This document shows positions 33,918 through 51,644 of a stretch of 64,000 bases of DNA, piece after piece. The stretch spans positions 124,001 through 188,000 of the forward strand of contig MCFH01000035.1 of NCBI GenBank assembly GCA_002104945.1. Direction: 5' to 3'. Under the pieces are notes generated by a model. That model searched no databases. It was given only the letters and a program-made list of their open reading frames with translations, and was not told where the DNA came from. Origin of the DNA: Piromyces finnis finn. Its lineage: Eukaryota; Fungi; Neocallimastigomycota. Position 1 is the stretch's first letter. Every line of letters begins with the position of its first letter. The position numbers were made by a program, and so were the translations under genes.

Positions 33918-35132
33918 TTACATAATAAATTCTTCATTCATATTCATTGGATGACTAGTAGAAAGCTGTGGAATTTGCTTGAAATTCTTTTCTCTCATAA
34001 CTTGTCTAATTTGAGTTAATAATTGAGAGTAAGTTAAGTTTGGATTTTCATTTAAAACAGTAATAAATGCATATGACATAGCACCAGTAGCTTGATTATT
34101 AATTTTAGCATCAGCAGAAGTTTGATTATCTCTACAACCAGAGAATTGAATTACATCAGCATCATGCTTTCTTTTTTCTATTATAGCTTGATTATTTGTT
34201 TTGTTACCACTTAAATTTGAAAAATCAATTGATCCATCAAAAAGGCCAAGAAGGGAACTAGTAATCATAGCTTGATCACCTTGAATAAAACTACCAACAA
34301 TATTGACAGCTTTTTTGAAGATTTCCTTACGAACATCATTTTCAATAACTTCAATGGATCCATCACATTGGTAGGTGTATGGAAGATCCATAACAGTACC
34401 AGAGTGACAGGAATCAAAAATGGCAGTTAATCTACAACCTTTTGGTAATGGTGTAACTAAATTTTCATAAATCTCATCATCAAGAATTTGACCCTTTGAT
34501 TGAAAATCAAGTGGTATTATTGTTTCATCAAAGCCATCAGTTTCATCACCTTCTTTATCTGTAGCTGTACCACCATGACCAGAATAGTGGAAGAATAAGG
34601 AATCACCTGGTTGAGCGCCTTCAACAAGCCATTTCATAGCTTCAATAATATTATGATAAGTTGGTTTCATTATTGGATCATCTTGTTCATCAGTTAAATA
34701 TAAGCAATTTTGGAAACCATATCTTCTGCACATTAATTCAGAAATATTTCTAACATCATTAATACATCCCTTAAGTTCAGCTGATGTACCTGTATAGTTA
34801 ATACCAATGAAAAGAGCCTTTTTATTACCATCACAAGCAGATCTTACAAATTCATCACCATCGTTTTCATAGTAAAAATTATCAACATCTCTATTCCATA
34901 AATTTTCTTCTCTAATTTTCTCATCAACGGTTCGATTAAATTCTTGATTCTCACCATCCCAGGTATTAAAATTAATATCAAATCTCTTTCTATCACGCTT
35001 AACTTCTTGATTCATATTTTGCATAACACTGAATTGGTCTATTCCTTGTTGTAAGAAATCTTGAAATCCACCATTTTCAAAGCTTTGTTGAAAACTTTCA
35101 AAGCTTCGTTGAAAGAAATCTTGAATAGTCAT
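33918..35132 (-). CDS. MCA1: Type I metacaspase, copy 1 (Phe/Gln-rich N-terminus), intronless
   Basis: KKALFIGINY, LKGCINDV, FFHYSGHGG (catalytic His), DSCHSGTVMDLPY (catalytic Cys), QFSGCRDNQTSADA, QIPQLSTSHP. The likely start is Met 35132 (MTIQDFF). Confidence 0.96.
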   Translation of the reverse strand: MTIQDFFQRSFESFQQSFENGGFQDFLQQGIDQFSVMQNMNQEVKRDRKRFDINFNTWDGENQEFNRTVDEKIREENLWNRDVDNFYYENDGDEFVRSACDGNKKALFIGINYTGTSAELKGCINDVRNISELMCRRYGFQNCLYLTDEQDDPIMKPTYHNIIEAMKWLVEGAQPGDSLFFHYSGHGGTATDKEGDETDGFDETIIPLDFQSKGQILDDEIYENLVTPLPKGCRLTAIFDSCHSGTVMDLPYTYQCDGSIEVIENDVRKEIFKKAVNIVGSFIQGDQAMITSSLLGLFDGSIDFSNLSGNKTNNQAIIEKRKHDADVIQFSGCRDNQTSADAKINNQATGAMSYAFITVLNENPNLTYSQLLTQIRQVMREKNFKQIPQLSTSHPMNMNEEFIM

Positions 35133-35434
35133 TTTATTTATTATTAAAACTAACATGTAAAAATAAAAATATATACAATATTTATTTGCAAAAAATTAAT
35201 TGTTAATATTTAAGTTATTATTATTATTATTATTATTAATAAATAACAATGTTTTTTAATTTATAAATTTGAAAAAGTATAATTATTTAAATTATCTTAA
35301 TAATAATGTGTTATTTATTAGTTTAAATCATACATTCAATATTGAATAATTTCTAATGATTTTTAACATTTGCTAAATTAATAATTATTAAATATGTAAT
35401 ATTTTAATTCTTAATGGATGTTAGATTTAATTAT

Positions 35435-35518
35435 ATTATTATTATTATTATTATTATTATTATTATTATTATTATTATTATTATTATTATTATTATTATT
35501 ATTATTATTATTATTATC
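35435..35518. repeat. (TTA)n microsatellite
   Basis: Direct reading of the sequence; spurious poly-Leu ORF 35418-35600. Confidence 0.93.
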
Positions 35519-48974: not shown

Positions 48975-50498
48975 TTTATTTATTATTTAATATTTTTTTT
49001 ATTATTTAATATATTTATAAAAAAAAAATAATAGAAAGAAAGAAAAAACTGTATTTATATAATAAAAAATTATTATGGAATGTATCAATCATGATTAAAG
49101 TTATAATTTTACATTATTAACTTGGTTCACTTGGCAATTAATCCAATTATAAAAATCTTATTTGCTGTCATTTAATTAATGATGTTAAATTTATAAAAAT
49201 TTTTCCTGGATACATTTAATTAAAATTATGAAAAATTTAAAAAAAAAAAAGTATCAATGCTAATAAAAATGAATATGTTGCAATATGAAAAATTAGCTTA
49301 AAATAGGTTAAAGTAGAAGATTATATTGTAAAAGATGATTATTTTAATATTATCAAAGGGTTATAATAACCCTTATGAGTAATAATTTAAATTAAAATTT
49401 AAAATAAAAAGAAAAAAAATGTCTCACTTTGTATAATAAATTTAAAAATGTTAAAATAACATTTATTAAGACATTCATTTATAACTATAAATAAAAATAA
49501 ATATTTTTAAAATTTTATTATCACAATTTTATATGATGGTTATTTCCTATCTATTCATAAAAAAAAAAAGTTAATATATATATTTAACATATTTTATGTA
49601 CTAATATCATAGCATTTTTAATTAGTTCATTTTATCTAATAATAACTCATTCAAATTAATAATAATTAATAAAGAAAAGAAAAAAAAATGAAACATAAAA
49701 AAATAAAGATTAAAAAAAAATTATACTTACTTGATAAAATGAACATAAAATAACAATATATAAATCTGATTTTATATTCACTATTTTATTAAAATATTAA
49801 TAAAACATTTGAAAACTATATTTTTAAAATGTTAAAATATTAAAAGCCAGCCCCTTATTAAAAAAAATGATAATAATAAAATTTATAGTTTAAGTATTTT
49901 TGTAGATTAAGGTCAAAAAATTTTTTATTTTTCCAAAATGTTTATGAAAATATAAAGAAAATATATATATTATACTTGTAAAAAAATTAATGCGTATAGT
50001 TTTTCTTTTATTTTTATTTAAAATGTAAAATATTGCGTTTAATATTTACTAATTTATAACATATAATTTATATATTATTAAAAAAAAAAAAAAAAAATTC
50101 TCTGTTTATATTCATTTACTGTTAATAATTCATTTTTAATATTGTTTCAGTTTTGTATTATATTAAGTATTATAAATATAATTTATGATAGACATTATCT
50201 TTTATATTATTAATAATAAAATATATATTGTTTATAAATAATAGAAAATAGCTACTGAAAAATATTTTTAAAAAAAATGGTTCTATATAATATATTTTAG
50301 ATATAAAAATTAAGGAATTAAGGAATAAAATCAATAATAAACTTGTTGAATTTAATTTTATATTATTACTCTTTATCCATATTAATATTTTTTGATTTAT
50401 AAATATAATAGTGCAAATGCTAGGATCTAATGATATTGCTATTTATACTAAAAATATTATTAAAAAAATTACGTAAAAAACAAAGATTTTTATGTTGT

Positions 50499-51644
50499 TT
50501 ACATTGAGAACTTTTCGTTCATGTTTAATGGACGACTAGTAGAAAGTTGTGGAATTTGAGTAAATTTCTTTTCAGCCATAATTTGCTTAATATTAGCTAA
50601 CATTTCGGTATAGGTGTATTCCTTTTCTTCATTTAATAAAGTAATTATAGCTAAGGACATAGCACCAGTAGCAACATTACCAATTTTGGCATCAGCACTA
50701 GTTTGATTATCTCTACAACCTGAGAATTGAATAACATCAGCAAGATTTTGTCTTTGCTTAAGAACTTCTGGATCTACACCATTAGAAGCTGCTTTTCTAA
50801 GAGAACCATCGAAAATACTCTTAAGAGAATCAGCAATTCTATCTTTATTACCACTATTAATACTATCAATAACATTTGAAGTTTTCTTGAAAATTTCCTT
50901 ACGGACATCATTTTCAATAACTTCGACCTTTCCTTGACATTGATAAGTGTATGGGAGATCCATAACAGTGCCAGAGTGACAAGAATCGAAAATAGCTGTT
51001 AATCTACAACCACGTGGTAATGGTGCAACTAAATTTTCGTAAATATCATCATCAAGAATTTGACCATTAGTGAGGTAATCACATGGTAAAATGGTTTCAT
51101 CGAATCCATCAACTTCATCATTATCCTTATCTTTAGCAGTACCACCATGACCACTGTAATGGAAGAATAAAGAATCACCTGCTTTAGCATCCTTAGTAAG
51201 CCATTTCATTCCATTAATAATGTTTTGATAAGTTGGCTTCTTTCTTTCATCAGATTGATCATCAGTTAAAATTATAGCTTGAGTGATACCAAATTTCTTA
51301 GCAACTAATTGAGAGATATTCTTAACATCGTTAATACAACCATTAAGTGGACTTTTTCCTCCGATATAATTAATACCGATGTAAAGAGCCTTCTTATTAC
51401 CACTACAATCAGATCTTGTAAATTTATCTCCTTCTCTTTCATTGTAGAATTTTTCAACATCATTATTCCAAACTTCTTGACTCTTAATTTGGTTATGAAT
51501 GTGATTAGTTAATTTTGAAGTACTATTATCAGTGTTAACTTTAATCTTATATCTCTTAGTTTCTTTGATAACTTGACCATTGACAATTTTTGTTGTGGTT
51601 TTAATAACCTCCTTATATGGAGCTTCGGTAGTAATAGTAGACAT
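50499..51644 (-). CDS. MCA1: Type I metacaspase, copy 6 (short Thr/Lys/Ile-rich N-terminus), intronless
   Basis: Likely start ATG 51644 (MSTITTEAP); HYSGHG and DSCHSG intact; QIPQLSTSRP. Confidence 0.96.
   Translation of the reverse strand: MSTITTEAPYKEVIKTTTKIVNGQVIKETKRYKIKVNTDNSTSKLTNHIHNQIKSQEVWNNDVEKFYNEREGDKFTRSDCSGNKKALYIGINYIGGKSPLNGCINDVKNISQLVAKKFGITQAIILTDDQSDERKKPTYQNIINGMKWLTKDAKAGDSLFFHYSGHGGTAKDKDNDEVDGFDETILPCDYLTNGQILDDDIYENLVAPLPRGCRLTAIFDSCHSGTVMDLPYTYQCQGKVEVIENDVRKEIFKKTSNVIDSINSGNKDRIADSLKSIFDGSLRKAASNGVDPEVLKQRQNLADVIQFSGCRDNQTSADAKIGNVATGAMSLAIITLLNEEKEYTYTEMLANIKQIMAEKKFTQIPQLSTSRPLNMNEKFSM

Follow-up and report, generated by a model that had tools for sequence, protein, structure and literature searches.

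Six tandem type I metacaspase genes of Piromyces finnis carry distinct N-terminal heads that are inherited with gene copy and array position

A 64,000-nucleotide stretch of the anaerobic gut fungus Piromyces finnis (contig MCFH01000035.1, positions 124,001 to 188,000 of the forward strand), referred to below as the window, carries six intronless open reading frames (ORFs) on its minus strand between positions 33918 and 51644, each of which was determined by the ORF listing and Pfam to be an intact type I metacaspase, a protease of cell death and quality control. The six paralogues, c1 to c6, share a similar protease core and differ in the N-terminal segment that precedes it, here called the head. 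The vertical inheritance of the heads together with the gene copy and the array position was established in comparison with Piromyces sp. E2, Anaeromyces robustus and two Neocallimastix genomes. The reading that we consider likely, and hold with good though not full confidence, is that of a conserved tandem array of six paralogues, each with a prodomain of its own, which have diverged in place, are vertically inherited and are subfunctionalised.

The limits of the genes were set at the probable eukaryotic ATG starts. Peptidase_C14 (PF00656) was detected in all six copies with 131-150 bits against a cut-off of 21.4 and E values of about 1e-38 to 1e-43: c1 (33918-35132, 404 aa, E 1e-43), c2 (37101-38591, 496 aa, E 4.5e-43), c3 (41129-42613, 494 aa, E 8e-42), c4 (44100-45320, 406 aa, E 3.4e-43), c5 (47895-48974, 359 aa, E 2.7e-40) and c6 (50499-51644, 381 aa, E 7.9e-38). 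The motifs of the catalytic dyad, HYSGHGG for His and DSCHSG for Cys, are invariant in the six copies; in an alignment of 89 homologues neither the H nor the C of the dyad varies, and the acidic columns are conserved. Apart from its first 100 residues or so, c4 matches yeast Yca1 (4F6O, E 2e-84) and the Candida glabrata enzyme (7QP0, E 1e-83) in sequence throughout. Its alignment with Yca1 is unbroken over residues 100-405, so that p20 is followed directly by p10, without the long linker of type II enzymes. The AlphaFold2 model of c4 has a mean predicted local distance difference test (pLDDT) value of 80.9, with the core above 90, and the target-normalised template modelling (TM) scores of the model against 4F6O, 4F6P, 7QP0 and 7QP1 were 0.82-0.88 (Foldseek). 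An N-terminal prodomain, as expected of type I metacaspases, is present in five of the six copies as a head of 29-130 residues, while c5 has only 8. The six genes are type I metacaspases (MEROPS C14B), and their closest public relatives are proteins of Piromyces sp. E2, Anaeromyces robustus, Neocallimastix and rumen metatranscriptomes.

All six copies share the junction motif [KRG]R[YF]x-Phi-x-Phi-N, upstream of which the heads are very different. The c1 head (residues 1-48, 34989-35132) consists of F/Q-rich pseudo-repeats of the amphipathic helix type. The c2 head (residues 1-125, 38217-38591) is rich in G, M, Q, P and R and is built of about six units of 17 residues; Tandem Repeats Finder (TRF) resolved it into a 51-bp unit repeated 5.9 times at 95 % identity. 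The c3 head (residues 1-130, 42224-42613) contains GPGGFG and GGFGGPGM repeats, for which a 45-bp unit repeated 3.6 times at 96 % and a 54-bp unit repeated 2.5 times were determined by TRF, units of 45 bp and of 27/54 bp being of the GPGGFG type. In c4 (residues 1-54, 45159-45320) GIQQ repeats are combined with a Q/N-rich amphipathic segment, c5 is nearly headless (8 residues, 48951-48974), and c6 begins with a T/I/K-rich segment (residues 1-29, 51558-51644). Glycine makes up 44 % of the c2 head and 58 % of the c3 head, and methionine 20 % of the former. Downstream of the junction the proteins are 57-82 % identical, c2 and c3 being the most similar pair (82 %). An earlier note on this DNA had described six copies with unlike heads ahead of a shared junction and with similar cores behind it, and this description holds, including that of the repeats; its view of the heads as prodomains is also supported, type I metacaspases being known for low-complexity heads with a regulatory or localising role, such as the P- and Q/N-rich prodomain of Yca1 (PMC5053244) and the disordered one of AtMC1 (PMC10473220).

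The distribution of the head classes was surveyed among the 120 best database relatives, and every class of the window recurs there in other species. In what follows, P-numbers are labels for public database relatives and L-numbers for fetched loci. QQGI heads, the type of c4, were found in P0001-P0028, including P0016 of N. lanati and P0022 of A. robustus. FQ heads, as in c1, occur in P0029 and P0031-P0035 (P0031 from A. robustus), GMGRP-type heads, as in c2, in P0036, P0037, P0040, P0045, P0047, P0048, P0050 and P0058, and GPGGFG-type heads, as in c3, in P0046, P0049 and P0052. Short heads were assigned to P0053, P0056, P0057 (Piromyces E2) and P0070, and the T/I/K head to P0062-P0068. The repertoire of anaerobic fungi exceeds the six heads of the window: further classes stand on the same core in P0066, P0071, P0072, P0078 and P0079-P0088 and include a K-rich 'MVK..KIKIK' type, PAENKP repeats, a Y/N/P-rich type and long poly-Thr.

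At the genome loci the head classes keep their order. The window order c6-c5-c4-c3-c2-c1, followed by a SWEET gene (MtN3_slv; PF03083, E 6e-20; 30320-30889, minus strand) that lies downstream of c1 and served as the synteny anchor, agrees with the order found at the loci of other genomes. In raw DNA of Piromyces E2 a GPGGFG-headed ORF of 499 aa, whose c3-type head has the same 'MYMGGPGG' start, is followed by a GMGRP-headed ORF of 443 aa and then, at the end of the locus, by a metacaspase gene of 405 aa whose head was not read. In A. robustus, MCFG01000266 carries a GMGRP-headed ORF (433 aa), an FQ-headed one (399 aa) and then SWEET, and MCFG01000437 a gene with a T-rich head, one with a head beginning 'MNFINS' and one with a QQGI head. 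The two Neocallimastix genomes have a metacaspase gene followed by the MNFINS-headed and the QQGI-headed genes, so that in both Anaeromyces and Neocallimastix MNFINS-headed genes occupy the array position of c5. The nearest genome-derived cores of c2, c3, c4 and c5 all bear the same head class as the window copy, with identities of 87-92 % for c2-c4. In the case of c1, the set held no genome orthologue from a near genus; the nearest database core, that of P0035 (90 %), has an FQ head. In the tree of genome-derived cores, c5 was grouped with the short-headed gene of Piromyces E2 and the MNFINS gene of Neocallimastix (99/100), and c6 with the T-rich and related set (100/99). Cross-species conservation of the heads, the lack of which the earlier note had listed among the refuting results, is thus observed between genera.

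Public gene models of these loci trim the glycine-rich heads. In Piromyces sp. E2 the model P0044 has 370 aa against an ORF of 499 aa and P0060 (partial) 306 aa against 443 aa, and in A. robustus P0074 has 307 aa against 433 aa; the three places are L001 9614-11113, L001 16550-17881 and L002 5180-6481, respectively.

The heads belong to the messenger RNA, as demonstrated for the orthologues. Orthologue contigs of mRNA size (1.3-1.6 kb) that carry c1- or c4-type genes begin with an AT-rich 5' leader, in which an in-frame stop just precedes the equivalent Met. In the window, in-frame stops stand 3-5 codons 5' of the start Met in c2-c5.

Neutral drift was considered as an explanation of the heads, in which low-complexity sequence would arise by replication slippage in an AT-rich, repeat-prone genome and would be tolerated as disordered protein. 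The length of the c2-type head ranges from 125 aa in the window to about 78 for Piromyces E2 and about 74 for A. robustus, with the number and the unit of the repeats varying between genera, and the 95 % identity of the c2 repeats suggests a recent expansion; moreover, both modelled heads (c4 and c6) have low pLDDT values and one paralogue is practically headless. Against this, the head class and the first and last residues of the heads are kept across genera, and sequence is conserved in the non-repetitive heads 1, 4 and 6; in head 6 the segment YKEVIKTTTK[IV]V[ND]G[QK]V[IV]KET is retained in P0062, P0063, P0065, P0067 and P0068. Heads 2 and 3 maintain a GC content of 53-55 %, contrary to the mutational bias, where their own cores have 32 % and the genome has about 18 %. 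The ratio of nonsynonymous to synonymous substitution rates (dN/dS) of the heads between genera was 0.12-0.45 and their dN was about 1.5-3.5 times that of the core, these being rough values, as they come from 41-116 codons, the repeats align ambiguously and codon bias is strong. The heads are constrained, although less than the core, and we regard neutral drift as improbable.

The junction itself may be a site of processing. Together with a NLW..D..FY helix it makes up a conserved linker of about 50 residues (c4 residues ~51-99, with equivalents in all copies), the helix of which is modelled with pLDDT values of 77-89 for c4 and 57-71 for c6. In linear offset, taken from the sequence alignment, the distance from the dibasic junction to p20 roughly equals that of the Yca1 in-vitro sites R72/K86. 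By analogy, the junction is a plausible autoprocessing site that fits the Arg/Lys specificity of the enzyme and would release the head; the heads are thus probably removable there.

Several points weigh against the reading of an array that diverged in place, the roughness of the dN/dS values being one of them. In the tree of genome-derived cores c1-c3 form a single clade (90/90) that is not resolved internally, and for this reason the order of the head changes cannot be fixed; gene conversion probably explains the lack of resolution. Expression of the window's own genes is judged from word shares alone, 59-74 % of the words of the c2 stretch being contained in four sequencing runs from one organism that are guessed to be RNA. 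The junction has low pLDDT values (43-58 in the c4 and c6 AlphaFold2 models) and its cleavage is inferred by analogy. Finally, in a quick tree of 81 cores five to six records (P0019, P0011, P0027/P0028, P0029 and P0030; JGI records, L008) pair one head class with the core of another, and these may be real recombinants.

The last point bears on true mix-and-match, in which recombination or gene conversion would move heads between cores and uncouple their histories. Exchange between copies does take place: c2 (37456-37687) and c3 (41469-41700), both on the minus strand, share a tract of 232 nt with at most three differences and an exact run of 173 nt, in cores that are otherwise 81 % identical. 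This tract is gene-conversion-like and lies wholly inside the core. In the mismatched records, sliding comparison placed the switch of similarity inside the core too, near residue 120 or 240, and never at the junction. All of these records are of coding-sequence (CDS) length and come from metagenomes or metatranscriptomes, and P0019, the one that was checked, is a single JGI record as long as its CDS; they are probably artefacts of assembly, chimeras in which near-identical transcripts of two paralogues were joined. With the breakpoints inside the core and the CDS-length record of P0019, head/core incongruence was rejected as evidence of swapping at the junction. In the same 81-core tree the head labels required 19 changes, compared with 49.6 when the labels were shuffled. 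Head, core and position stay together at every genome-derived locus that was read, and the interchangeable modules proposed in the earlier note are not borne out; free exchange of heads between cores is, in our estimate, highly improbable.

Some of the heads are related to one another. The earlier description of them as mutually unalignable stands for alignment by eye within the window, where the heads of c1 and c4 are only 18 % identical, and does not stand once the orthologues are added. With these, heads 1 and 4 align in a common pattern, Phi-QQG-Phi-QQ-Phi-QQ...NG...QQG-Phi-Q, and the comparison of their profiles by hhalign gave a probability of 95.5 % (E 1.3e-8, 38 columns), a score which Q-richness may inflate; at the level of sequence the two are shown to be homologous. 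Likewise, heads 2 and 3 of other species have a common ending, ...PGMGRG-RRY, with mixed GPGM/GGFGG units, and on this sequence evidence they make up one G/P/M-rich class. The sister genes of c5 bear the 'MNFINS...' head, for which the match with heads 1/4 (hhalign 51 %, E 1.5e-4, 17 columns) is only suggestive of a link. A remnant of such a head 5' of c5 was ruled out, as all three frames are filled with stops. A similar amphipathic N-terminus, 'MF[GSK]xL...', occurs in metacaspases of early-diverging fungi (Basidiobolus, Dimargaris, Syncephalis and others; P0089, P0090, P0093, P0095-P0100, P0104, P0106, P0111 and P0112). One ancestral element may underlie both this N-terminus and the 'M[DN]F[LI]' start of c4 and of the MNFINS-type heads.

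Under the reading of divergence in place, the heads would not have been shuffled and would have changed where they stand after old duplications. Heads 1 and 4 would derive by point divergence from one Q-rich amphipathic-helix ancestor, heads 2 and 3, as one G/P/M-rich class, by expansion and contraction of repeats, and head 5 by truncation, its sister genes having the 'MNFINS' head. Since then each head has passed from genus to genus together with its gene and its place in the array, subject to purifying selection, with gene conversion keeping parts of neighbouring cores alike, as in the tract of c2 and c3 that was seen wholly within the core. Going by the analogy of type I metacaspases already characterised, the common protease would be Ca2+-dependent and Arg/Lys-specific. 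The heads would serve as flexible regulatory or address segments that damp its activity or steer it to different partners, condensates or aggregates, and autoprocessing at the dibasic junction ([KR]R followed by Y/F) could probably cut them off. The near-headless c5 would be an unregulated or differently regulated form, and the outcome would be six subfunctionalised versions of one protease. A role of the heads in regulation or localisation is probable by the same analogy.

The earlier note had also drawn a parallel with the amyloid signalling of fungi (HET-s, PP, sigma), according to which the heads would be amyloid or prion-like modules, of the HET-s/PP/sigma or the Q/N prion kind, nucleated by a matching motif on a receptor such as a nucleotide-binding leucine-rich repeat (NLR) protein. 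The Q/N fraction is 0.27 in the c1 head (48 aa) and 0.33 in the c4 head (54 aa), compared with 0.05-0.12 in the others, and the G-I-Q-Q-G repeats loosely resemble the PP/RHIM core. Head 6 is drawn by AlphaFold2 as a beta-hairpin (11-21 / 24-34) with an N-G turn, at a low confidence (pLDDT 36-49), heads 2 and 3 have a likeness to the G-rich kind of low-complexity domain that phase-separates, and the Yca1 prodomain is Q/N-rich (PMC5053244). On the other hand, when the heads without their cores were compared with Pfam at E up to 10, those of the window matched no model, including RHIM, HET-s and Ses_B/PP, and for those of the orthologues the only hits were helical families below threshold (TarH, DivIVA). 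The core signature of PP/RHIM/BASS3, G-Phi-Q-Phi-G (bioRxiv 10.1101/2020.01.06.895854), is missing from the heads on direct reading: c4 has G-I-Q-Q-G, with Q at position 4, and G-V-Q-T-I, and c1 has none.

Heads 1 and 4 have the periodicity of helices. Their helical hydrophobic moments were 0.51-0.60, within the top 0.6-3.6 % of shuffles, whereas the strand moments were below average; for the c1 head the value was 0.60, which is reached by 2.4 % of the shuffles. In the AlphaFold2 model of head 4 helices were placed at residues 3-8, 11-31 and 34-41, with low confidence (pLDDT 36-57). Both heads, at 48-54 aa, are also short for a Q/N prion-like domain, for which about 60 aa or more of Q/N-rich, charge-poor, disordered sequence was taken as the criterion.

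Nor was a partner found in the searches, which covered the window, the representative database and the word search, short of the whole genome, although known amyloid systems pair adjacent genes (bioRxiv 10.1101/2020.01.06.895854). When the profile of heads 1/4 was searched against 1.84 billion representatives, the only hits were four repeat proteins, all unrelated and none of them an NLR, with the reservation that a motif may stay hidden in clusters represented at 50 % identity. In word searches heads 4 and 6 occurred only on PF00656 proteins, at 0.55-1.75 times the length, so that long NLRs fall outside this range, though not outside that of the representative search, and the database carriers of head 4 were PF00656 proteins in 11 of 11 cases. 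No NACHT or NB-ARC domain was detected among the ten largest non-array ORFs (of 21 ORFs of at least 90 aa in the 64-kb window), a set from which intron-split genes may escape; these ten match NatB, SWEET, NUBPL and a weak WD40. Within this scope, the search for NLR/NACHT-type or other proteins with the same motifs yielded no carrier of heads 1/4 or 6 other than metacaspases, and the chance that the heads are amyloid signalling modules appears very slim.

A more specific version of the regulatory role was also formulated, in which the heads would be six 'address labels' that send one Ca2+-dependent protease to six sites, with the c2 head possibly acting as a redox switch. The G/M/P and GPGGFG heads would direct the enzyme to RNA-protein condensates or aggregates, the Q-rich helices to a membrane or lipid surface, and the T/I/K hairpin to a specific partner. 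The Met-rich c2 head could be an oxidation-sensitive switch by analogy with yeast Pbp1, in which a Met-rich low-complexity domain has this function; if true, such a switch would be attractive for a strict anaerobe that needs to react to oxygen. Taken as a whole, this version is tentative and rather unlikely.

Elsewhere in the window, which is very AT-rich (~18 % GC), Pfam matches were obtained for an ORF fragment of a NatB_MDM20 subunit (21349-22077, plus strand) and for that of a NUBPL/ParA-type P-loop NTPase (57920-58282, minus strand). The spacer between c4 and c5 is largely filled by a (TAT)n microsatellite (46467-47283, ~273 copies, 92 % matches), and the remaining spacers contain shorter AT-rich tandem repeats.

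The array offers a natural experiment on type I metacaspase prodomains, with a near-constant core, six distinct conserved heads, one of them almost absent, and an order of genes that is fixed throughout a fungal phylum. The pattern favours prodomain-driven subfunctionalisation, and the six copies could be used as they are as constructs in assays of localisation and activation. There is also a caution for surveys, which, with head-trimmed gene models and mosaic metatranscriptome 'proteins', would miscount the diversity of heads and could wrongly conclude that domains are shuffled. In the literature search no paper on the metacaspases of anaerobic fungi was found. The novelty lies in these particular head classes and in the constant association of each with one gene position of a tandem array throughout Neocallimastigomycota, on which no paper was found either. 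The variability of prodomains on similar cores has already been described in Schizophyllum commune (PMC6895675), and the array is an ordinary, though undescribed, case of divergence and no new kind of system.

Among the known systems, fungal amyloid motifs (HRAM/HET-s, sigma, PP) and RHIM are, like the heads, short terminal segments on a death effector, and heads 1/4 share with them the richness in G, Q and N. They differ in that heads 1/4 have helical periodicity and no partner or adjacent NLR was found, and in that the amyloid motifs sit on HeLo/HELL-type or lipase effectors and not on metacaspases (bioRxiv 10.1101/2020.01.06.895854). In AtMC1 the prodomain, predicted to be disordered, is an intrinsically disordered region that governs stress-granule dynamics (PMC10473220), which makes it a model for heads as localisation or condensate elements; its LSD1 zinc finger and hydrophobic 360 loop are both missing from the array copies. 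The N-terminus of TbMCA2 covers the active-site cleft (PMC12914765).

Closer to the array are Yca1/Mca1 and Candida glabrata MCA-I (4F6O, 7QP0), which have the same fold and dyad and a low-complexity prodomain ahead of p20-p10. The Yca1 prodomain, P- and Q/N-rich and suggested to target aggregates, is removed in vitro at the basic residues R72/K86 ahead of p20 (PMC5053244). In contrast to the Yca1 head, the array heads are of G/M/P-repeat, GPGGFG-repeat, Q-rich amphipathic-helix or T/I/K type, or nearly absent; the linker of about 50 residues formed by the junction and the NLW..D..FY helix is without a counterpart in the Yca1 sequence alignment, and six tandem copies stand here against one Yca1 gene. 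The five paralogues of Schizophyllum commune, ScMC1-5, have, as here, similar cores, variable and poorly alignable prodomains of <10 to >100 residues, and a K/R-rich stretch before p20, which aligns with the AtMC1 cleavage site (PMC6895675). They are not described as an ordered tandem array nor with prodomain classes that cross genera, and their prodomain composition differs. In S. commune the prodomain lowers the activity, and ScMC3, with <10 prodomain residues, resembles c5 (PMC6895675).

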